Part shown: positions 41,414 through 63,233 of the stretch, one piece after another
How the letters are laid out: the number at the start of each line of letters is the position of its first letter
Position numbering within the stretch: position 1 is the first letter of the stretch
Source: Podarcis bocagei
Taxonomy: Eukaryota
DNA length: 64,000 nucleotides
Assembly: GCA_964188305.1 (NCBI GenBank)
Contig: OZ076899.1
Strand: one strand, 5' to 3'
Program-made: the position numbers and the translations under genes
Notes under the pieces: model-generated
The model's input: the letters and a program-made list of their open reading frames with translations, nothing else
What the model was told of the DNA's origin: nothing
The model's database searches: none

Positions 41414-41469
41414 ATGGCTGCGGCTGCGGCGGCTGTTCCTGTGAACCTGCGGCTCGGAGACCTGGTGTG
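41414..41469 (+). CDS. GLYR1: GLYR1 exon 1 coding part ([19 protein letters not shown])
   Basis: aaaATGG strong Kozak, TG/gtgagt donor. Confidence 0.94.
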
Positions 41470-44400
41470 GTGAGTTGCGGGGTGGCACCGCGGCGGTTGG
41501 GGGGCGCCTCCCCTCTAGAAAGGGGTGAAACGGGAAAAGCTGAATCTTCTGGCCTGGGCCTCGTAAGCCCGTAGGCGGCCATCGCCGCCGTTTGTGGGCA
41601 GAGCCCTGCGAGGGAGAGACACCCCCCCTTCCTCAGGCACAAACACGGACTCGCCTTGTGGGAGGAGGCACGGGCAAGTCAGCCCCGCGAGGACTTGGGG
41701 CGGGATGTGGGGCTAGACTTGCCTCCCGACCACCTTCCTGGAGGGGAAATTTGCCACCTTTAAGGGGGTGAAGGAAGTCGTAGGGGGCTGCTGGAGGTGG
41801 CGGCGGGCGACTCGACTCGAAGGGCGGCGCGGCCTGGGGCATGTTGCGCGTGAGAGGAGTTCACTTTTAAGAGACAGAGAAAGGTAAGCTTTGGTGTGAG
41901 CGGAGAAAACGAGTAACATTATCCGGGTGGTCGCGAGATGGGGAGGAGTTAAATCTGAAACACCACCCCATGGCTTCCATTAAATGTAGCCATATTGGGG
42001 GCCACTACAGTTTCCTAAACACGCAACTTCAATAGTTAAGAGGCTTGGGCCTCCTCTGGTTTTCTGCATTTCTAGTACTGGAAGAAACTGAGGTAAAGAG
42101 GCAAACTTGGTTGTGGGGAGGGGGGGAGTGCGTGCTAATATTATCAGTAAGCTGGCAAACTTGTGAGGAAGGGATATTCCGCATCAATTGGGTTGGTCTT
42201 TTGGTAATAGAAATGGAGCCAAGGGTAAATTCCTGCCAGCACTCAGTGTGAGCCAGGAAGTCTTAGGATCAAACTTATTGAAGCCTTAAGCAAGCTACTT
42301 TTTTCCTTTAGTTTTAGTTTTTAGACAGCATCGTGGAGAAAATGGCACTGACATATTCCGGAATGGAGCAAAGATTGTAATTAGAATTGTACAATAATGA
42401 ATTAATTAAAAGTTCTTTGAAAATTCAAATAAAGGTTACTGCTAAATAAATGGAGCTCTAGGTGGCTCAATGAGTGATCCTTTTAATTGGACCGCCTAAA
42501 TTCAGTGAGAGTTGTTCTGGAAGCTATTGTTTACTGTTGAAATCTGACTTCTTGAAATCATTGTAAATTGCAATGAGTACTTAAAGCAGAGTTGTCACAC
42601 ACAAAGTTATGAATAATGATAGTTATTTTAAATAACACGCTTAATGTACAATTGTCTTACTGTTTTATTTTACTTTTACAGCAACCCTGTGATTCAGGTT
42701 GCTGCTGTTCTTCTTTGCAGGATCTGAAGTGGAGAGGTAGTGACTTGGCCAAAGCCACCGAGTTAGTCCATAGCTGAGCTGGGATTTAAACTCAGGTTTT
42801 ATATTGTAATCCTATTGATATTTACTCTGAAGTAAGTTCCACTAGGTTTAGGGGAGCATACTTCCACGTAAGTGTGCACTGGGTAGTGTCCTCAGAAGCT
42901 TTTGTTCTCATTTTTATTCTCATTTCGTCTTGTGGGATAGATCACCAATGCAGCCACTTTACGAATGGGAAGCATGAAAAGTGTAATGGCTTCTCTACCA
43001 AAAGGATACTTTCCTTTTTTATACTAGTTAGTCCAATTGAGTTACTTGAAAAACCGAGGAACCTGCCCCCAGTACAACAGCTAACCAGGTTTAAATTATA
43101 ATGAAGTGTGGTAGTTACTCTGCAAAAAATGCTTTCTAAATTTGGATCCTTTCTAGAATGTTATAACAACAGAATGTATGGCTTTTGTTAACGCATAGTT
43201 TAGAAGTGGGCAAATAAGTTGAGCTACATTGGAATTTGTTCAATGAGTAATACAAACCCTTTTCTGCCTGCTCCTTTGTGACTTCCCACAATCATATTAT
43301 GCACTAAGAGCCACAAGGGAGCTGTTCCATAAAATTATTTGATACATCTTGACTGTCTCTTCATTATATGCCCAAAAATATTTTTTACAAAAAACAGAAC
43401 TTCAAATTATGTTCTTAATTAACAAGCACAAAGTGATTGTTGAAAATCCCACATAATGCAGTGAGGATACTCTGGAAATAACATTGTTAGGCTGCAAAAA
43501 TGTTTGCTAGCCTTCTGGGGATTGGTGAAAAAGAGATGGAGGGTCGCACTCTTGCAGCAAACTGTTGTGTTTCTGTGCTGGGGGTGGGCACTTTCCTCAT
43601 CTGATTCTCTGCCAGCCCATTCATTCACTAGCATAGAATTTTATGTACTCAGTTTTATGCATTAGTCCCTTTATGGTTTCTAGGCCGGTGCTTAAATGCA
43701 GGGTTGGTGTCATTGCTTGGTTGTGTTAGGGTTGAGGTACCAAATGGGGTAATCATCTGGAATTGCCGGTGTAATGGCCACCTTTTGTAAGAGAAGGAGC
43801 CAGTAATTATATGTGACTGTGCTGGAGTTGGTGCACAAATACAGAACTGGAAGCAAGACATAATTCTATGAAATTTTTATCTGGGCCTGTGAAGCCTGGG
43901 TTTTTTCCAGGGTAGTAGCTCAAGGCCATTGAATGCCAACCAAGTAGTGAGTCTGCTTCTGGTAGTTAAAGCCCTGTCTTCATTGAGCAGTGGTGTCTGA
44001 GCAATATGACTTATTTCAAGAGCCACTGAGCAGTTTATTTTTGTGTCCTCAAGATGGGTCATATACCACTAGAACTACAGTACACAGATTTTGCTCCCAA
44101 GAGAACATGGTGAATGGCAAAATTTTTGGAGCAGCTATTGATAATCTGGAAAAACTGGCATTTATTCATCTTTACGTATAAGTGTGGCTTATTGGCAGAT
44201 ACCTCTGCCATGCGAAGAAATCCTATTCCTATTTTTTTTGCTCTAATAATGGCTTCTATTAAGCATTTTTTCATTTAGTGTTTCTGTTAATTCTTCTAAA
44301 TGGTGGTCTTAAACAGATTTGTTTTAACTTTGAAACAAATAGCTATATACTCAACTTGCAAGTTTGTATAAATTTATATACCAAAGAAAAGTAATTATAC

Positions 44401-50400: not shown

Positions 50401-53400
50401 CACTGTATTGCCTGAAATAAAATGCAGAGGTTTGGGGTTGTAGTCAACAAAGTTTTAGTCAGAGTAGATCCTTTTAAATTAATTAATGTCATTAAGTTGG
50501 GCCTATTAGTTTCAGTGAGTCTACTCTGAGTAAAATTTAGTTGAACGCTACCCTTTAAAAGCCTGTTTTCTAAGTACTTTTCCCAGTTGACCTCCAGGCA
50601 GGAGTCACCAGTGTGTTGCACTTAAGATGTCATTGAACTCCCAATTCCATCAGCCCCAACCACCACAGCCAAAGGTCAGAAATGTTGGGAATTAGCGTCC
50701 ATTGTCCAATAACATCCAGAAGGCACAACATTGGCTTCTTATATGTTAGCTCATATTTTATTGTTTGTAGAACCTTAACTTTAAACCATTTCTGTTCTGT
50801 GACAATGGAAGATGTATAAAACCATTCACCCTACCTAAGCTAAGGGTCTAGTGATACTGTGAGCATATGTATTCTGTTTCCCTCCATTTTCTGTGGGGAA
50901 GTGATATAATGGTTCTAGTGATGAAAGAATATTGATAGGGCATAACATGAACACCTGTATTTATAAGGAGTACAACATGGTGTGTGTGGAGAATTTTATA
51001 AGCTGTAAAGTTGAAACTCACATGCCTTTCTTTTGTCATGAATACATGTCTAGATGAGACCATGTGTTCCAGGGAGCTCAGTTTTCATATATAATCATGT
51101 AGATAGGTGTCAATGTTATTCCACGTATGGCAGCTCTCTTTGTGAGGAAACAGTCAGATGTGAACAGTCCTTGGATCTGGGCTCTTCAGATATTGTGGGA
51201 CCCAAGAGATACTATTTTAATTTGAAAAGTGGTGCATTTAAGGAATTGCTGACTTTTATCTGGGATTCGACGGATAATACAGTTATGAGGTTCAACCTGG
51301 TGTGGTCCTGAGGCAATCTGTACTCATTGCAAGCTGAGCATGCATGCAGACAATTTATGCAGGATAAATGAAAAGGGGGTAGTTGAAATTTAGGAAAACC
51401 AAGCATGTTTCTGGTTGCTTTATTTGTCCTACTGCCCTTCGGAGGCTTGTCACAAGGATTGTAAATAGCCACTGACCTGAATGCCTGTGGCAAAAAAGAA
51501 TTCCCATCAGGTGAAGAAGCTGGGAAATTTGATGATTAAAAAAAAAGACTGATTTTGCAGGCAGTCCAGCAAATGTGTCTGGATATGTTTGTAAGTCAAC
51601 TTGCTATGTTTGGGAACATGCACAAAAGAAGATACTAGCGAGATTTTGGCTCAGTTCCAGGGAAGGGGACATTCTTTAGCATCCATGGAAGAATATTGCC
51701 CTGGATTCATAATTCCCCCCTTAAATTGCTCTCAGTTTTCTTTTCTAGTAGTACTGTGTAGGTGAAGAATGTTGAAGAGTTGCTCCTGTTTTTCATAACC
51801 ATTGGCTGACTTCTGGTTTTTCTATAGGGGGAAGCTGGGCCGATATCCTCCTTGGCCAGGAAAGGTGAGTTCTAGTGTGCACTTCACTTACTTTTTGGTG
51901 TTCTCTTTATTGGAGTAACATATTTTTATTAATGTCAAATGCAATGTGTAGATCTACATTTCCTGCAATATTTCAATTGACCCACAGCATGTTACATAAA
52001 CCAAAGTGAATGTAGACCAGTTTAGGTGGGTTTTGAAATCAATTGTACCCTGGATGTAGCTACTTAACCCTTTTTCTCTCTTTCTGAAAAAGTGCTTTCC
52101 CTTTCTTCATAAATATGCCCTGACACCACCCTCAAATAAAATGTGCAATCAGATCTTATGAATGAAATAAGTCCCATTTGTGTTCAGTGGGACTTTCACT
52201 CAAATGACAATGAATAACAGCCCAAGGAAAATTTTGAAGGCTAAAGATTTATTTGTAAATGTATTTTTGTTTTGCAAAAGCTCCAGATTTAGGCCTAAAT
52301 ATCCACCAGAAGTTCCATGATGTTATGCTAAGAGATGCCATGCTGGTGGAATCACACATAGTTGGCCTGGCCTGCAGTTGCTGGGGGCAGGCTCTTGGGG
52401 GCCCTGTAGAGATTAATTGGTTCAGCTGGGCCGGTGAAAAGGAGTTGCCTCAGTGGCATGGTGTGCCCATGTCATTCGTACCTTACAAAGCTACTCAGTC
52501 TTGTTCTCTTGTGCTGTTACTCTAGATCTGCAGGAAAAGCATGCTCATGTACCATAATTCATTGCTTGGGTTCGATTCTCTTACAGAAATTCTGTCAGCC
52601 TGTTTTTCATTCTCTGGCCTCTCACAGTTCTGCTGTCTATAAAAGAATGGACCATCTTAGCAAAATTTTAGTAGGAGGAGCACAGTGTGGGCGTTTCAAT
52701 ATCAATTCAGTATCTGTGTGCTAGAATCAAAGGCACAGTTACTGCTATTACTTTATTTCATTATTTGATATATCACCGATTAGTACAGTGTTTGATTGCT
52801 TCCATTCACTCGGATAAATGATTGACGAGTGTGACAAATGTCTGGATTTATCTCCTGAAAAGCTGATGCTTTTGTAGCATTTACCTTGCAAACAGTTTGT
52901 TACTCTAGGGATAATTACAGTCTGTCCTGATGCTGTGTTGTGTATGGTGTACTTAACTATGCAAAGCCTGTTGCAGAATTACCATCTAAACTTAGTCTAT
53001 ATCAGCGTAACTGGTGTGATTGCGAGGCATCATGCTGTGAACAGCATAATACACAGATAGCCTCATTTGCTCGTTGATTGACATGAGTGGTGCAAGTTGT
53101 TAGGGTACATCCTAGTGACCCAGAGTCCTAAAACGTGTTACACAAGTAGTTTGACATAATTGATTTCCAGGAAAATCTCAGAATGAGATATTTTTACATA
53201 TACCTGTAAAAACATGTTACTTGCATTTTTGTAATAAGCTTAGCCCAAAGTTTTAAGAGTAGCACTGCACTCAGGAATATGGGCCTTCTTTTTCTGGCGT
53301 GAATATACCTTTAGTTACAAGGTATTCTCCCCCCCCCCCCCCATAATCTTGTTTCACAAGTCTTTACCAATACATGCAAAGATTTTGGAGCGGGTTGTGT

Positions 53401-56400
53401 GTGTGGAGAATGTTTGAAAAGTTCCGTTTTTATTACCTCTAATTGTGGCTTCCTGTGTTTCTCAGATTGTTAACCCGCCTAAGGACCTGAAGAAGCCTCG
53501 TGGGAAGAAGTGCTTCTTTGTGAAGTTTTTTGGGACTGAAGATCAGTATGTACCCACTTCTTTTCTGCCAGGGGGATCTATTTTTAAACTTTAGAGCCTT
53601 TGTAGAAAAGCTGGCACAGTGCAATTTCATGACCGGTAAAAATAGTCTTAATTTATCAGCTAGCAGCAGAAACCTCTAGAGCCTATGTGCTGGTCAAGGC
53701 TGAAGAAGCCGATGTACCAGCTTACCTAGGCATCAGAAATGTCCATAGCCTTTTTTAGACAGTTTAACACACATCCACATTCCCTGCATTAGGAAGAATT
53801 TGACAGCATGTAGTTGGCATTGAGATTTATATCAAGGCTGGGGAACCTGTGGCCCTCCAGATGTTGGACTTCAGCTCCCATCAGCCCAGCTATAATGGCC
53901 AGTGGTCAGGGATGATGGGCATTCTAGTCAAGTAATACCTGGAGGGCTGCAGGTTTAATGTATGGTTTGTTAATTTGAAAGTCAGGCTTACATATTGAAT
54001 ATTGTTGCAGTTGATATCAGTGATGTCCAGTGAAATAGGAAGAAACTGGTTGGTGTAAAAAAACTGAAAAGCAATCTAGTTCATTCTCTCCCGGTCCCCA
54101 TCAAAGGCAGGCATTTTTGACCGTCTTCTTCATTTGCAAAATTCAGACTTCTGGGTTCCATAAACAAGTGGAGTAGGAAGTAAAGAGGGATCTCTGTTGC
54201 ATGTACAGAGAACCAAGGGAAGGGGTCAGGCATTTGCCTCATGGTGGATTTTGCAAACAGTTTGGTCTGCACAGTCCATTGGGAACTGCGTGAACAACCC
54301 CAGGAGAAGCTTCTATATTGTATCATAATCATCCATCCCTCTGTTTCTGCTTCAAGTCTTCCCGTGCTTGAGGAGCTGGAGCCCAAACTGCATCAACCAC
54401 GTACAAGAGAGAGGTATTAGCAGATTCAAGATACAATAGAGGTTTGCGGGTGCTCAGTAATCTTCAGTGGAAAACAACAACAAAGGGATTTGGGAAATCC
54501 CCAAACATCCCCGTAAGACTTCAGTGATACAAAATGTTGAAGGAGGAAAAATAAAAACCTGATAACCATGTGGAAGGAGAAGTGTAATGGGGAGTGAACA
54601 AAAAGTACTCCGTGTTGCTACATTTTGTTGCAGGTTGCACTTATACAAAGTATTTCTACTGAGATATATGGACCAATGATCTGATGCTGTAAGCACCCAC
54701 ATATGATAATTTCATTTAAAAACTGGGCCATTGTGTCAGCAATCAACACATTATGCTTTAGACAACAGCATAAACTCCTCCTTTATACTTGCTTTTTCTG
54801 AAGCTTAAATATTTGGACTGACAGTGCCACACGAGAGAGTGCTTATTTTCTAGCCAGGTATCAGTGCTTCAAGGCTGTTGCTATTCCTCACCCTTAGGTA
54901 GTTCCATTTTTTTTGTAAATTCTTTAAACTGGTTTTAACCTTACATTTTTATATTGTTGTAACCTGCTATGGGAGCTTATAGTGAAGAGCAGGTAGGAAG
55001 TAATACAACATCATGAGATGGGAACAAAAAAGGAGAAGGGAGAAACTGCAGTATGCTTTTATTTGCACTTGAAAAGTGGGTCAAATGGTCTGGAATGCTG
55101 TTTAGTTCCAGCATAGATTAATGAACAGATTGAAAATGAAAACGTTGATGTACCAAACCAAACTAAATAGCAGTATGGCATGTAGACCAAACCAAATAGC
55201 AGTATGGCATGTAGTTTATAATATAATTCGGTGAAGGAGGTTGGCTAAAGAGCAAGGCCTGAGGAATGTCTTAATCATGTCCTGTTGAATGATTTCTGTC
55301 TGCTGAGCAGTGGATATTTCATTCAAGTACAGACTACATCTTATGTATAAGGGAAAGGCAAGATATAAGCAGGGTTCTGTGTGCTGCAATTTGAGGGGGG
55401 CATAGAAGATTGTATTGCAAAAAAATAGTTTCCTGAGGCAAGCAAAGTAAGTTTCTAGCCCTTACTGCGTTTATAGAAACAGGAGAGTTGATGCAAAGTA
55501 CATTTAAACTTTAAACTGTCCTGTCATCTTTAGCTGAAGGGCAGTATATAAAATTATTAAATAAAAAATAAGAATTTCTATTTCTATAAAATTAAAAAAA
55601 TCATTCAATGGCCCTTTGTGACCTGTGTCTAATCCTTGGGTGAGCCTTTGAGTCACAGTCATTCACTTTAAGTGGGAATTTAGTTTCCATCTGACAAAGT
55701 GTGATAATGCTCTGTTAATCCTGGTTATCTCCTCCAGTTTCTGTAATGGAAACAAAGCAGTACCTCCAGTAATGAAGCAGCATTCAGGCAAGTGCTCTCC
55801 ACCCATACTTTTGAGGAAAAACAACATAAACCTGAAGTAGTCAAGGAAAAAACCCAGTGTACCTTCTGACAAACTAATTTACAGCCCATTTGTATAATAT
55901 TTGCAACAATAACAACTAATAATAATAAAAAATTGTTAATTATACCCTGCCCATGTGGCCAGGCCTCCCCAGCCACTCTGGGTGGCTCCCAACAGAATAT
56001 TAAAAACACGATAAAACATCAGACATTAAAAACTTCCCTAAACAAAAACTATATGATATTTTTCACCACTCAAAGTACTTTACATGCGTTATCTTATTGT
56101 AGTCTTTAACAGACACCCTGTAAGGTAGATCAGTATTATCCCCAAAGTGCGAATAGTGGGGGGAGACTGAGATCGTTAGGCTGAATTCATGGTAGAGGTA
56201 AAGTTTGAACCAGGGTCACCCTGACGTAGTTTAGCCTCTTAGCTACTACGCCACACCAGCTCTATGATTAGGAGCATCATATTATAGAGCCATTTGGGAA
56301 TATGACTTAAAACTGTAGGTCTTGCCAGATGCAGAAAATTTGTGCATCTAGGAGAGTTTCTGGCATATTGTGCTGGTATGCCTATGTGTGCTATGTGCAT

Positions 56401-59400
56401 TTCACAAGACTTCACAATGGAAGACTTCCCAAGTGACTTTTTTGTGCTGTATTTGGTTGAAACAACCTCCCTCTCCTGCCAAAAACAGGAAGTATGCATG
56501 ACACCTGATTGCAGGCTTCTGGGAAGAAACTGAATAGTCACAGTTGAGCTTTTTTATTTTTTATTAATGCATAAATATTTAACTGAAACATTCTTTTTCA
56601 TCAAGTAGTAGCTCTGGCTTGTGGGCCCAGTTATGTCCACGAAGCCTCTCCTTTTGGCTTGAGAGACCATTTTAGCCAAGCCACAGCCTCCTGCCCTGAA
56701 TGTGATGTCATATACGATGTCACGATGTCAGGGTGAGGGAGGTAAATTCATATATTGCTGCTGAAACTCTGTTTATGTGTGCAATTTGATTGGAAACTGT
56801 TGCCTCACAATTCAACTTTCTATTTGTTTATTTTTATTTATTTTTAAAGGCAAGTTTCTAGTAGAAATATTCTTGGAAGTATGTGTCTGTGAATCTTGAG
56901 AAATCTTAACTCTTTGAGGGTTTGCTGAATAAGACATTCAGAGTTAGATATAGGGCTTTAGTGCTATGCTTGCCTTCGTATTCTTCCCCATAGTTCCCTT
57001 TTTCAGAATAAGCAGACAGGTGCTAGTCATACAGTTTTCCTTGATGCACACTTGAGTTACCTCTAGGCCTGGGCAATATATTGCCCAGGACCAGTACGTG
57101 GGGGCAGACTGCAATGACAGTTTCACACAGTGGTCTTATCACTGGTGAAAATGTCACCACTCTTGAATCCCACTGCCCCCAGCACGCTGAGGGAGAAACA
57201 AACTAACTGGGAGCTGGCAGCAGAGGGACTCAAGCGACAGCAATTTCACCAGCCATATAGCACTCTGCCCCGGCAGAGGGAGAATCAAGCTGAATCAGTG
57301 AGGTGCTGATACAGCTTGTTCCTTCCTCTGCTTCTTTAAACTGTTTGGCTGGGGAACGAGCTGCTGCCCTCGCCTCAGCCAACCAGTTTTATGGAGCCAC
57401 CGGCTCACACAAAGCAGCGGCAAGATGGGGGCTCCGTTAAAGTACTCCCCCCTTGCCAGCTGAGAGAGCCCCAACCCTGCTTGCACACCAGTAAAAGCGG
57501 AATCAGGGCTGCTCAGCTGGGGAGTGCAAAGCCTGCTCTTCCCAACTGAGAGCCTCGCCTGGTTGCCTTTTCTGGGAAGGTGTGTTGCGCCTTTCCTCCC
57601 AACCCGGTGGAAGGCAGCCAGGCAGTGTAGAGGCTCTTAGATGCTGTTGGCGGGCCCAGCGCTCTCCAGCTTTGCAAGGCATGGATAGGGTGGTTTCACT
57701 CGGGAGGGTGGGCTGTGTCATTCCTCCTGGGGTGAATGAACCATCACTGGAGGAAAGAGATAGCACACCCGCACTGGCGAAGGCATTCAAACGCACGAAG
57801 CCTGACAGGTTCCATGCACTTGGCTTCTGTCACTTTGTCTGTCTTTGGGAAGTGGGGGTCAAGCGGGCAAGGTAGCTCACCCTCCCCCCACGCCAGCAAA
57901 GGCAGAGGGAACTTGGCCAGGGAGCCCCAAGGTCCTTGCTGCTCCAGCACCAGCAGCAGGGGACTCGGGTCTGGCTCTTCTGGGGGCAGGAGCTTTGCTG
58001 CCCCCAGTGGAGCCTGGCCAAGGGGCCTCAGCTGGGGGCAGGAGCCTTTCCCTCTGGCTGAGCAGCAGACTGGGGCCAGCTGCATTGGCCACAGCCTGCA
58101 AGGCGCTGGGGTGAAAGCGCTTCAGCTCTCACAAAGAGAACTGTGGCAGTTTTACCCAGCATCTCACTGGCTGGGGCCAATGCAGCTTTTTTCATCATTG
58201 TAGTATATCGTCAAACTGTAGTGATACGATGCAATGTTGAAAACCCAACATCGCCAAGCCCTAGTTACCTCATCACATAATTTTAATTTTATTTACCGTA
58301 TTGGCCTGAATATAAGATGCATCCGCAAATAAGCTGCCCCTTTAAAATTCAAGGCATATTTGCGGGTGCTGCCCGCCTCCTGGCACTGCCTCCCCAAGCC
58401 GGTGCCAGGGGAGGCTTGGGAACGGTGGGTCGGTGGGCTTCACACCACTGCCTTGTGCTCCCGGGCTGCTTCCTGGAGTGGGTGGGAGCTGCACCACTTT
58501 GCTGGCAGTCTCTCCCCCCTCCCACTTCCTTAGGAGGCTTGGGAGCAGCGGGCAGGTGGCGCGGCGCTGCCCCACACTCCCAGGCTGCTTCTTGGCATAA
58601 GCTCACGGTATAAGCACTGGGAATACCCAACACTGAACATGAGTATAACCAACTTTAATAAGTGAATGGGCATTTTTGGTTTTAAAATAAAAATAAAAGG
58701 CAAAAGCTCTCATTCTGGTGACTTATGGCTGCTGTTTGTAGAAGGAATAGTGCCAGAATGGTCATATACATGGCCTAGTTCATAATATCTTCCCCAATTT
58801 TGGAACAAAAGAGCACAACTGTGATGCCAAAACAAGGAAAGGAGTTAATCCGTACACATTCTCAGTGCCCAGCCTCCTGACTAAGGCTGCTTTGTGCCTA
58901 ACTGCTTACCTAGAAATAAGCTCAATTTAATTCATTAGGACTTATTTCTGAGTAGGTCTGGCTAGCATTGCACTGTATATTATTAATATGTTTTGTCTGC
59001 AAGCTTAAATATTTGTGTGTATGGATATGTTAAGTCAGGATAAACTGCTTTAAAACACTAAAGACTGAAATCAATAGTATCATAATTCTGCTAGGACCAA
59101 TTCAAGTCATAGAAGAAGTGAATTAAAGCTTTTTTGAGTTCATAACTTTTATCAGACTGGGTGAGTATAGATTGTGAGGAAGACAGATGTAATAGTTACT
59201 TGGCATAATGGAGAGCCCTGTTTGTGGTAGTAGTTGAAGATTGAATGAAGGACAGATTGCACAGGTTGCTCACCGGGGCAAGAAAGGCTGAGCATATAAC
59301 AACAATTCTGGCCTGACAGCGCTGATTATGAGTTAGTTCAGTGTTTCCCAACCTTTTTTGGGCAAAGGCACACTTGTTTGATGAAAAAAATCTCGAGGCA

Positions 59401-62400
59401 CACCACCATTACAGCCCCGTGACGTCAGCACGCAGCGTCACGCCGGGAGGGATGCACGAAAGTGTAAGTTTCAATTTTTTCCCCTCCCCCTTGCCGGGGA
59501 ACCTCCAAGCTTTGGGGGTGGGGGGGGAGGAGGCAGCAAAGCGAGGCAGGAAGGAGAGCGCGGCTTGGCTGGGTGAGCTTTGGCAGGGAATGAGAGCCGC
59601 GAGGCGGGCGCTGCGGACGGAGGCGCTGCCCGCCGAGCTTGCAGGCAGCCAGGCAGGCAGACAGCGAGAGCCCCGCGCTGGGCGGCCTCTCCTCGCCGCC
59701 GCCGCCCCGCCTCTCGTCGCCCGACTCGCCCGCCTCCCTCCAGGCAACATCTCGCGGCACACTAGTGTGCCGCGGAACAGTGGTTGGGAAACACTGAGTT
59801 AGTTTCCAGGCGCAATTCAAAGTGCTGGTTTTGACCTATAAAGTCTTAGGTGCCCCCCCCCCCCGAACTGACCCAAACCCTGCAATCAGCATCTGAGGCC
59901 CTTCTTTTGGGGCCTCTCCACAGGCGTTCTGGAAGATGGCAACATGAGAAAGGGTCTTTTCATTGGTCTAGCTCCCTGCTAGTGGAATGCTTGCTCAGGG
60001 CAGGTTTGCCTGGCACCATTGTTGCATATCCTTAAGTGCTATGCAAAAACATACCTTTTTAATCATTTGGATTTTAACTATCAGTGGCCTTTTTGTGTTG
60101 GTGAGATGTTTTAATGTAGATGGTTATTTTCCAATGCTGGTTTTAATGTATGTGTTTGGTTTTTTGCTTAAAATATTCTAACTCGCTTTGAGTTGCTGTG
60201 GCAAAAAAATGACTAATAAACTTCATAAATAATAATTAAAAAACCCTTTTTTTTACTTAGACTTTTGGTTCTAATAAACAAATTACAGTGGTGCCTCGCA
60301 AGACAAAATTAATTTGTTCCGCAAGTCTCTTCGTCTTCCGAGTTTTTCGTCTTGCGATGCACGGTTTCCCATAGGAATGCATTGAAAATCAATTAATGTG
60401 TTCCTAGGGAAACCGCCTTCAGACCAGGTCCGGGGACAGTCTGTCCCCGGACCTCTTCTGAAGGCTGGGGGGGGGGGACAAGGGCTTTTCTTCCCACCCC
60501 CAGCATTTTAAAAAACCCCAGGACAGGGGAGGACTTCTCCGCTGTCCGGGCGATCTTAAAATGCTGGCGGGCGGCATTTTAAAATCGCCCCGGGACAGCG
60601 GAGGACTTCTCTGCTGTCCGGGGCAATTTAAAAGCCCCTGGGAAGGCAGGCAGGGGGGACAGAGACTTTTGCCCCCCCCCCCGCCAGCCTTCAGAAGAGG
60701 TCCTGGACCTCTTCTGAAGGCGGGCGGGGGGCGAAAGTCTTTGCTCCCCCCCGCCTGCCTTCAAAAGCCCTCCGGGACAGGCAGGCAGGGGGGAGCAAAG
60801 ACTTTCGCCCCCCGCCCGCCTTCAGAAGGTGTTCCCGCCCCGCCGCCCGGCTTCGGAGCACCGTTCCGAAGCCGGGCGGCGGCGGGAGGTGTTCCCTCCC
60901 CCCCGCCCGGCTTCGGAGCACCGTTCCGAAGCCGGGCTGCGGCGGGAGGTGTTCCCTCCCCGCTGCCCAGCTTCGGAGGAGCCTTCCGAAGCCCGGCGGC
61001 GGCGGGAGGAGGTGTCCCCGCCCCGCCGCCAGGCTTCGGAGGAGGTCCGAGGACAGTTGGGAAGACGCGCTGCGCTTCCCCGCTGTCCCTGAGATTTCCC
61101 TATGGGCTGTCGTCTTGCGAAGCAAGCCCATAGGGAAATTCATTTTGCGAAGCGCCTCCAAAATGGAAAACCCTTTCGTCTAGCGGGTTTTCCGTTTTGC
61201 GAGGCGTTCGTCTTGCGGCGTACCACTGTACTCTACTATTGCTTTTGGATACCCTTTTTCTAATGGACCAAAATTTCTTCCCACGTTGTTTTGTCTACTA
61301 AAACTGCATACTATTCCTTGGTGTGGTGCTTAAAAGTCAGGTGGAATGTGATTTTCTTGAGTTGGTGTTTAAGCATTTTATTCAGGCAACAACTCCTTTA
61401 AACAATGGTTTTTGCAACTCCACTGGAATTCTGTAGATAGAATATTGATTTATCTTATAAAATGATATGCATGGATTCTGATTCTTTGTTTCTGTGACAG
61501 AAGTTGTAAAGTTAATAGATTACATATAGCAACATACCTACTGAGAAGGAGCAATTTCATTTAAAACATGTCATTAGGAACAAAGTCTAGGACTTGAAAT
61601 ATCAGAAATGCTATGGAAATGCATATAAAAGAAAACAGAAGAGGTGAATAAGTTCCCCTTCATTCTGTAATAGTTGAGTTCAGTTAAAGACAGGTGTTTT
61701 TCCTAATTCAGCTAGGTGCTGCTAAGGAATCAGTGTTTTGCACAGGTATCCTAGTTGGACGACAAACTGAAGAACAAAAACAAAACAAAAAGCACCACCC
61801 CGCTCAGTTGTTTGGGAGTTGAAAGTCTGGCAGTGTGAGGGGTATCACCAGATTGAATCAAGAAAACCAAAGGAAAACCTTAATAGCTTAATTTATCCAA
61901 TTCATTATACGCAAAATAGCTCTTAGTCAGAAGTGACTTCTGATTTCACTAGTGATTTCCTTGAACACAGAAGACACTCTCACATTGAAAACCAGCAGTG
62001 GCATCTGAGGAAGAACTTCTGCTTGAAAAACATCAGGCACAAACATGTTTGAGATGTGGTTTGTTAACAAGTAAACTGCTTTTTCAGCACCTTGGGTTCA
62101 CCTCTAATTGAGGAGGTATGGGAGGGAACGCTTACAGATAACTGAAGTAGTATAAAGTTAGCTAAGAAGAGGATTTGCCTTTGGCGCTAGGTAGTATGCC
62201 ACTTGTGAAAGTATATATGTTCCAAGGAAGGCTCTTGGAATACGGTGGGGGGTGGCGGGACAAAGTATTCAGGTTTTGTCCACACATCTTGCTTGGAAGG
62301 GCTGCCAATTACCTCTGGGAGCGATATGACTGGAAAATACCATTTTCATTTCTCTTTTATTAGTGCTTGGATTAAAGTGGAGCAGCTGAAGCCTTATCAT

Positions 62401-63233
62401 GCCCACAAAGAGGAAATGATCAAAATTAACAAAGGCAAGAGGTTCCAGCAAGCTGTGGATGCTGTGGAAGAATTCCTCAAAAAAGGCAAAGGCAAGGACC
62501 AGGTGAGTGTCCTTTCATTTAGTTTTGCCTCCTGACACCGTTCCCTGGAATAATGAATAAAATGCTTCCGTTTTTACTTCATTGCCAGGTAGGTGTGACA
62601 GACTATGTCTCAAGAATTATACTATGGAGCAGTGATTAGGATCACATTTAAAGTTGTAAAGCAGTTAAGTTTCACAATTCTGTTCCCTCTCTGACATCCT
62701 TAAAGTGAACAGTGACAAAAGGATCGGCTGGATCTCCTTACAGCGTTGGAATGTGTTTGCTATGCACTCTGGAGTTAGAACTTTTTTTCCCTCATAAAGT
62801 AGGTGTCTGCCTAGAACACACAGCTGTGCTTTGCCTCTCCTTGTCTGTTCTAAATAGTAGCTTGAACCTGCTAAAACCCTGAGTTCAGGGTCCTTGGCAT
62901 TCTTCGGATATCTGGCAAAACTCATGTTTGGATTTTGTGAGTTTGGGGACAACAAAATCCATGCCAGCTCATGCCCCTTCTTTTCCTCATCCTCTCTGTT
63001 CTGTAATCTCTCAGGCTTCTCATAACTCCACCGAAGAGAAGAATCGGCGGAATTCGAGTGAAGAGAGGGGCAAGCAGTCAGTGGGAGAAGAGAAACACAA
63101 AGCCAATTTGTCTGAAGGGAAGCCGAAGAAGAGGGTGTCTTCCGTTTCTTCAGAGCGAGGCTCAAAATCCCCTCTGAAGAGAACGTATGAGCAAAGCCCC
63201 CGGAAGCGAGGGCGCCCCCCTAAAGATGAGAAG
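41414..63233 (+). CDS. GLYR1: GLYR1 / NPAC (cytokine-like nuclear factor N-PAC), 5' part. join(41414..41469,51828..51864,53466..53545,62364..62502,63015..63233); continues beyond the window
   Basis: The spliced product [70 protein letters not shown].. is the GLYR1 PWWP domain. Exon 5 ends with the AT-hook [12 protein letters not shown]. All introns are GT..AG with matching phases. Confidence 0.96.
45724..46285. mobile_element. Tc1/mariner-pogo-type MITE (family A), interrupted by the Sauria SINE
   Basis: TA flanks; TIR CAGTGGTACCTCGGGTTA / TAACCCGAGGTACCACTG. Confidence 0.88.
45743..46093 (+). mobile_element. Full-length Sauria-type SINE
   Basis: GGGACGCGGGTGGCGCTGTGG.. head with B-box GGTTCGAATCC, (ACCTTT)n tail, 13-bp TSD TACCTCGGGTTAA (45730-45742 and 46094-46106). 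Confidence 0.9.
47272..47491. mobile_element. Tc1/mariner-pogo-type MITE (family A)
   Basis: TA flanks, TIR CA(C)TGGTACCTCAGGTT / AACCTGAGGTACCACTG, body shared with the 45724 and 50210 copies. Confidence 0.88.
48304..48431. mobile_element. Short palindromic hAT-type MITE
   Basis: 21-bp perfect TIR CAGTGTTTCTCAAACTTGGGT; TSD ATCTAGGC / GTCTAGGC. Confidence 0.85.
50210..50405. mobile_element. Tc1/mariner-pogo-type MITE (family A)
   Basis: TA flanks, same TIRs and body. Confidence 0.88.
51828..51864 (+). CDS. GLYR1: GLYR1 exon 2 ([16 protein letters not shown] motif)
   Basis: ctatag acceptor, AAG/gtgagt donor, 37 nt. Confidence 0.95.
53466..53545 (+). CDS. GLYR1: GLYR1 exon 3 ([26 protein letters not shown])
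   Basis: tctcag acceptor, CA/gtatgt donor, 80 nt. Confidence 0.95.
54357..54413 (+). CDS. GLYR1: Putative alternative in-frame GLYR1 cassette exon (+19 aa in the PWWP domain)
   Basis: pyrimidine tract and ttcaag acceptor, GAG/gtatta donor, 57 nt, phase 2-2, no stop in the GLYR1 frame. Confidence 0.55.
55157..55214. repeat. 29-bp tandem duplication
   Basis: ACCAAAC(T/C)AAATAGCAGTATGGCATGTAG x2. Confidence 0.85.
57064..58263. mobile_element. 1.2-kb hAT-like non-autonomous element
   Basis: Imperfect TIR TAGGCCTGGGCAAT / ATCGCCAAGCCCTA and perfect 8-bp TSD GTTACCTC. Confidence 0.85.
58296..58608. mobile_element. Truncated TA-flanked DNA-transposon relic (CCGTATT.. end, pogo/Tigger-like)
   Basis: TA-CCGTATTGGCCTGAATATAAG start and CACGG-TA end; the right TIR is mostly lost. 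Confidence 0.5.
59339..59796. mobile_element. hAT (Charlie-like) MITE, GC-rich interior
   Basis: Perfect 15-bp TIR CAGTGTTTCCCAACC and perfect 8-bp TSD AGTTAGTT. Confidence 0.92.
60286..61228. mobile_element. Family B element (opposite orientation to the 30457 copy) with a GC-rich palindromic and tandem-repeat interior
   Basis: TA flanks, TIR CAGTGGTGCCTCGCAAGAC / GTCTTGCGGCGTACCACTG, about 120 bp of terminal homology to 30457-30766. Confidence 0.88.
60827..61050. repeat. 60-bp tandem repeat (about 3.7 units), each unit a hairpin
   Basis: Consecutive 60-nt lines align. Unit 1 has a perfect 17-bp stem CGCCGCCCGGCTTCGGA (60841-60857 / 60865-60881). Confidence 0.9.
62364..62502 (+). CDS. GLYR1: GLYR1 exon 4 ([24 protein letters not shown])
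   Basis: tattag acceptor, CAG/gtgagt donor, 139 nt. Confidence 0.95.
63015..63233 (+). CDS. GLYR1: GLYR1 exon 5 ([24 protein letters not shown]-hook)
   Basis: tctcag acceptor, AAG/gtttgt donor, 219 nt. Confidence 0.93.

Follow-up and report, generated by a model that had tools for sequence, protein, structure and literature searches.

A probable alternative GLYR1 exon of lacertoid lizards that would lengthen the β3-β4 turn of the PWWP domain

PWWP domains and the GLYR1 locus of Podarcis bocagei

GLYR1 (NPAC/NDF) is a reader of H3K36me3 that facilitates transcription through nucleosomes. The way in which a PWWP domain contacts the modified histone has been described for several other proteins. 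In PSIP1, the cage is formed by M15, Y18, W21 and F44, specificity is governed by the cage-flanking residues H48 and E49, and the H3K36me3 peptide perturbs strand β4 as well as the cage (PMC3663649). For BRPF1, a groove made up of the insertion motif, strand β4 and the preceding loop was found to accommodate the H3K36me3 peptide, and in HDGF2 the residue T50, which is located on β4, bonds with the histone (PMC3119473). PWWP domains have a known variable insertion motif, which is located between β2 and β3 (Wu et al., 2011; PMC3119473). This motif is variable in length, is found at an intron position, lines the histone groove and may set the ligand specificity, and in these respects it is comparable to the insert studied here. 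The two differ in position and in the level at which they vary, as the insertion motif lies between β2 and β3 and varies between paralogous families, whereas the lizard insert would lie between β3 and β4 and be optional within one gene.

Alternative splicing of GLYR1 itself has been described in human, where the gene has a Tra2-dependent alternative exon (Best et al., 2014; PMC4175592). Like the lizard exon, it belongs to this gene, and it is a regulated cassette that uses purine-rich enhancers; no link between the human exon and the PWWP junction was found. No publication on the lizard cassette exon was found in a literature search, and the human exon was the only GLYR1 cassette described in the literature consulted.

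The window, i.e., the whole 64-kb stretch of P. bocagei DNA that was analyzed, contains the 5' part of GLYR1 on the + strand. The following parts of the gene were identified:

41456..41512 (approximate), + strand: GLYR1 exon 1, coding part; Podarcis and Zootoca proteins have an identical N-terminus, and the end coordinate is approximate
51835..51871 (near 51.84 kb), + strand: GLYR1 exon 2 region with the PWWP motif
53466..53545, + strand: GLYR1 exon 3, IVNPP...FFGTED followed by CA, coding for strand β3, which includes the cage phenylalanine
62364..62502, + strand: GLYR1 exon 4, T followed by AWIKVEQL...KGKDQ, coding for the helices as well as strands β4 and β5

A single CpG island, at 40-42 kb, contains exon 1. 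Intron 3, which separates exons 3 and 4, has a length of 8.8 kb. An Rfam scan of the whole window gave no hits.

The cassette exon in the window sequence

Within intron 3, a short segment was identified that could be joined to both neighboring exons without loss of the reading frame. Its elements are:

54338..54356, + strand: AAG acceptor of the cassette exon with its pyrimidine-rich tract
54357..54413, + strand: cassette exon of 57 nt, phase 2-2, assigned from the sequence, its translation, an identical peptide in P. muralis and P. raffonei isoforms and a 17/19-identical one in Rhineura floridana isoforms
54414..54419, + strand: GTATTA donor of the cassette exon

The 57-nt exon is directly preceded by the tract ccctctgtttctgcttcAAG, whose last base is 54356. 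The exon encodes 18 residues and contributes positions 1 and 2 of the closing Ser codon, and when the CA of exon 3, the 57-nt segment and the T of exon 4 were joined, the translation was open and contained no stop. The coordinates, the length of 57 nt, the phase 2-2, the peptide and the missing stop had all been given by the sequence-only reading and were correct on re-reading.

A canonical AG acceptor, a GT donor and a pyrimidine tract are all present, and both splice sites are weak. With rough position weight matrices (PWMs) built from general knowledge, the cassette acceptor scored 3.8, compared with 5.1 for the acceptor of exon 3 and 6.2 for that of exon 4, and 17 of the 641 intronic AGs scored at least as high as the cassette acceptor. 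By the same rough measure the GTATTA donor scored -0.8, and the constitutive donor of exon 3 (TCA|GTATGT) scored -1.5. This agrees with the earlier statement that the AAG acceptor and the GTATTA donor are weak, with the addition that the donor is at least as strong as that of exon 3. The 60 nt that precede the exon contain no strict yUnAy branch motif. Inside the exon, the purine-rich motifs GAGGAG, GGAG and AGAGAG are present, which would fit an enhancer-dependent exon with weak sites.

To compare the segment with its background, all open, frame-preserving AG..GT segments of 27-300 nt in intron 3 were counted. There are 517 of these, and eight, the cassette included, have both rough splice scores equal to or above those of the cassette. 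First-order Markov copies of the intron contained a mean of 1.23 equally good segments, and at least one was present in 63% of the copies. The open frame around the cassette runs from 54184 to 54417 (78 codons), beyond both ends of the exon. Judged from the window alone, the 57-nt segment is no more than chance. What places it above chance is that annotated proteins of other lizards carry the same peptide at this junction.

Some further features of intron 3 were noted. The interval 60827-61041 is a tandem repeat with a GC-rich unit of 60 nt in 3.5 copies, and most of the remaining "good" pseudo-exons counted above stem from this array. The 3' part of the intron (58000-62000) is CpG-rich, with an observed/expected ratio of 0.5-0.7. 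Just 3' of the weak exon 3 donor, the interval 53546-53709 is conserved in Sceloporus and Lerista, and within it 53558-53610 is conserved in Paroedura too; this block may be an intronic splicing control region.

The possibility that the exon is derived from a transposon was also considered. No second copy of 54000-54900 was found in the window, except for a MITE-like hairpin about 400 nt upstream, and the exon region had no matches elsewhere in the four other squamate GLYR1 loci. An exonised transposon was rejected, as neither the self-comparison of the window nor the four squamate loci revealed a recognisable repeat copy; an old or rare element could have escaped these comparisons. The hairpin itself (53843-53957) is a near-perfect palindrome of 115 nt with a minimum free energy of -61.7 kcal/mol (z -4.3). 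It has a partial copy at 2914-2968 and matches the Paroedura intron in both orientations, and it looks like a MITE-type repeat.

Occurrence of the exon in annotated isoforms and in other taxa

Exon 4 was used as a query to retrieve full-length GLYR1 proteins, which were scanned for insertions between GTEDH and AWIK. Isoform X13 of Rhineura floridana was the one insert-bearing protein in this retrieved set. When the region of Rhineura comprising exon 3, the insert and exon 4 was used as query, all insert-bearing proteins ranked at the top. An identical insert of 19 aa at an identical junction was found in 11 NCBI isoforms of Podarcis muralis (X4-X7, X9-X14 and X19), which span two annotation runs and have the same N-terminus as the window. 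In Podarcis raffonei at least three isoforms (X11-X13) carry the insert, and some sequences are common to P. raffonei and P. muralis. The Podarcis accessions (XP_0285610xx, XP_0532210xx and XP_0777745xx) represent three annotation runs in two species. For N-PAC/GLYR1 isoform X5 of P. muralis and P. raffonei (XP_028561059.1 / XP_053221035.1), the N-terminus, the junction and the 19-aa insert are identical to those of the window, and no difference was observed at the protein level over exons 1-4. In RefSeq these models are named "cytokine-like nuclear factor N-PAC" or "putative oxidoreductase GLYR1".

In Rhineura floridana, the N-PAC isoforms X4, X6, X7 and X13 (XP_0614564xx, e.g., XP_061456421.1) contain an insert with the same junction and length as in the window, in which the frame is kept and 17 of the 19 residues are identical at the protein level. 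The two changes, Q to H and R to C, are non-conservative and are both located in the basic half of the insert. The insert is thus found in transcript-style gene models of three species from two families. Models without the insert were found for Rhineura (X8), for Zootoca vivipara (X6, X7 and X13) and for P. lilfordi (one model). Forms with inclusion and with skipping of the exon are both present as public gene models, i.e., at the level of protein models, and the existence of insert-free isoforms suggests that the cassette exon is optional. Since annotation pipelines can use protein evidence to pass isoforms between relatives, expression may not be independently proven by the Rhineura and P. 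raffonei models.

The cassette exon is already part of the public isoform models and is no unknown gene feature. The sequence-only reading had called it hidden, a label that has to be dropped because NCBI has annotated the exon; its own caveat, that the exon might be present in automated isoform predictions, turned out to be right for P. muralis, P. raffonei and R. floridana.

To determine how far the exon reaches, the window was compared with the whole GLYR1 genes of Sceloporus undulatus, Paroedura picta, Lerista edwardsae and Erythrolamprus reginae. Exon 3 gave 100% tblastn matches in these four squamates, and exons 3 and 4 had 98-100% protein identity in all four, which are non-lacertoid. 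The intronic blocks that could be aligned to the squamate relatives are 53546-53709, 55044-55142, 55286-55316 and 61662-61716. No homolog of the cassette exon and its flanks was detected in intron 3 of any of the four (an iguanian, a gecko, a skink and a snake) by blastn, blastn-short or a shuffle-checked scan of the translated peptide. In Sceloporus, the syntenic interval between the conserved blocks has a length as in the window, and its identity of 42% equals the level of shuffled sequences. The lizard insert peptide was absent from all retrieved bird, turtle, mammal and amphibian isoforms, and metagenome contigs contained no match to a degenerate DNA pattern representing the exon's invariant half. 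The conservation across amniotes that had been put forward for the exon did not hold, and deep amniote conservation was rejected, as the exon is absent from four squamate lineages. On this sampling, the exon would belong to Lacertoidea (lacertids and Rhineura), either because it arose there or because it was lost elsewhere.

One of the alignable blocks, 55044-55142, lies deep in the intron, some 630 nt 3' of the cassette exon, and is 84% identical in Lerista and 72% in Sceloporus. It contains stops in all three frames and is therefore a conserved non-coding element.

To estimate whether the likeness between Podarcis and Rhineura could arise by neutral evolution, a simulation without indels was performed in which the frame had to stay open with at most two amino-acid changes, and for which the neutral divergence between Podarcis and Rhineura was extrapolated from more distant lizards. 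The probability of this outcome was at most 1e-4 at a neutral nucleotide identity of 70% or lower, and rose to 0.006 at 80%, 0.04 at 85% and 0.19 at 90%. Intron 3 is mostly unalignable between squamate suborders, and the split between lacertids and amphisbaenians is only moderately younger than the splits between these suborders. Combining the two, constraint on the exon is inferred, and the exon would have been kept by selection since the lacertid-amphisbaenian split.

In four mammals and a turtle, too, in-frame inserts have been annotated at this junction. Those of the bat Hipposideros larvatus and the whale Kogia breviceps comprise 21 aa, are ∼64% identical to each other and are located at the same phase-2 junction (GTED|...|S-AWIK). 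The rodents Apodemus speciosus and Myodes glareolus and the turtle Chelonia mydas each have their own in-frame insert at this phase-2 junction, and that of A. speciosus looks like a B1 SINE. In a comparison of the proteins, none of the bat, whale, rodent and turtle peptides had an evident similarity to the lizard insert. The presence of unrelated inserts in several taxa indicates that this intron readily yields annotated inserts, which are possibly noise.

Position of the insert in the PWWP domain and its possible role

The insert-bearing isoforms have a precomputed match to PF00855, and the rest of their PWWP domain in P. muralis and P. raffonei is identical to that of other squamates. The aromatic cage residues Y25, W28 and F52 (P. 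muralis numbering, from the alignment), which were aligned with Y18, W21 and F44 of PSIP1, are invariant or nearly so. When PSIP1 and HDGF2 were aligned with GLYR1, their residues F44, H48, E49 and T50 corresponded to F46, E50, D51 and H52 of GLYR1 in this alignment. The insert enters right after H52 (GTEDH|AW), at the start of β4 and next to the cage-flanking residues. By this mapping it lies at the histone H3 groove, in a loop other than the one that usually varies in PWWP domains. It consists of an acidic half, LPVLEELEP, followed by a basic half. Its earlier placement beside the methyl-lysine pocket agrees with the published PWWP structures (PMC3663649, PMC3119473).

A sequence search of the PDB yielded no GLYR1 PWWP chain and matched only Drosophila LD23804p (6kco) and HDGFL3 (6iip). 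The domain was modeled with AlphaFold2 with and without the insert. Both models have the same strand order, with a β1-β5 barrel and helices, and in the model with the insert the strands comprise residues 17-20 (β1), 28-32 (β2), 47-52 (β3), 77-81 (β4) and 85-87 (β5). The insert was predicted as a low-confidence loop between β3 and β4 (pLDDT ∼50-66) with a helix of one turn. The mean pLDDT was 72 with the insert and 64.5 without it, which is a moderate confidence obtained from a shallow alignment of 24 rows. These models fit an insert that would be a tolerated, flexible loop.

The annotated lizard isoforms make a real, frame-preserving alternative exon in the GLYR1 PWWP domain, as proposed from the sequence at the outset, the best reading of the locus. 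Very probably the 57-nt stretch is a real coding exon of lizard GLYR1 whose use is optional, and presumably it is spliced into Podarcis mRNA at an appreciable level. It is likely that this genuine alternative exon is restricted to lacertoids on the present sampling and lengthens the β3-β4 turn by 19 residues. Before the databases were searched, a chance AG..GT pseudo-exon was strongly favored, in line with the 1.23 equally good segments per simulated intron and the 63% of simulated introns with at least one. The annotated isoforms overturned this, and since the exact junction carries the peptide in annotated isoforms of three species, an open segment that arose by chance and is never spliced is now highly improbable. 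Splicing at a low level could also be mere noise, in which case the stretch would be a functionless, occasionally used pseudo-exon that deep RNA-seq detected in Podarcis and that protein evidence then spread to the annotations of relatives, and its likeness to Rhineura would reflect slow or regionally constrained evolution of the intron. The weak acceptor and donor, the statistics at chance level and an open frame that continues well beyond the exon are as expected for noise, as are the Zootoca isoforms that lack the insert in the retrieved set and the unrelated inserts of bat, whale, rodents and turtle, one of them presumably B1 SINE-like. However, the insert is present in all 11 P. muralis isoform sequences retrieved, which come from two annotation runs, and in three or more P. 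raffonei isoforms, the 17/19 identity with an intact frame in an amphisbaenian is improbable unless the neutral identity is 85% or higher, and most of intron 3 cannot be aligned even among squamate suborders. Noise is for these reasons judged to be unlikely.

The uniform presence of the insert in the P. muralis sequences could also mean that inclusion is the default in Podarcis. The insert-bearing PWWP domain would then be the normal protein, a lineage-specific elaboration and not an off-switch. None of the 11 retrieved sequences, which include the near-longest isoforms X4-X7, is insert-free, the isoforms of P. raffonei (at least three) share insert-bearing sequences, and the remaining PWWP domain is unchanged. 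Against this, X1-X3 and several other isoforms lie outside the retrieved set, insert-free forms may sit in large 90% clusters, insert-free models exist in P. lilfordi, Zootoca and Rhineura, and the weak splice sites fit partial inclusion. Default inclusion is possible but rather unlikely. A more far-reaching proposal is that the insert is an acidic/basic loop in the H3-tail groove, selected in lacertoids since the lacertid-amphisbaenian split, that it gives a second form of the protein with a changed affinity or specificity for H3K36me3 nucleosomes, that mammals exonised sequence at this site independently, and that the β3-β4 turn is a recurrent tuning point; this is distinctly unlikely.

For the alternative exon as the likely reading, a mechanism can be proposed. 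Given its weak splice sites and internal purine-rich motifs, the cassette would be optional and enhancer-dependent. Its inclusion would place a loop, first acidic and then basic, next to the methyl-lysine pocket and the surface that faces DNA. The predicted flexible loop may modulate the engagement of the nucleosome and H3K36me3, most likely without abolishing it, possibly by placing acidic residues beside the surface that binds DNA and the histone tail. The idea of a reader switch is plausible. The presence of the insert in all P. muralis and P. raffonei isoforms seen, together with the invariant rest of the PWWP domain, argues against an insert that simply causes loss of function.

An optional loop at the edge of the methyl-lysine pocket would amount to a natural experiment in which a histone reader is tuned by splicing. 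Because the exon is already present in public models and seemingly confined to one lizard clade, its value lies in providing a natural pair of variants for a binding study. The cassette exon would also be an example of a young coding exon that is retained in a very conserved domain.
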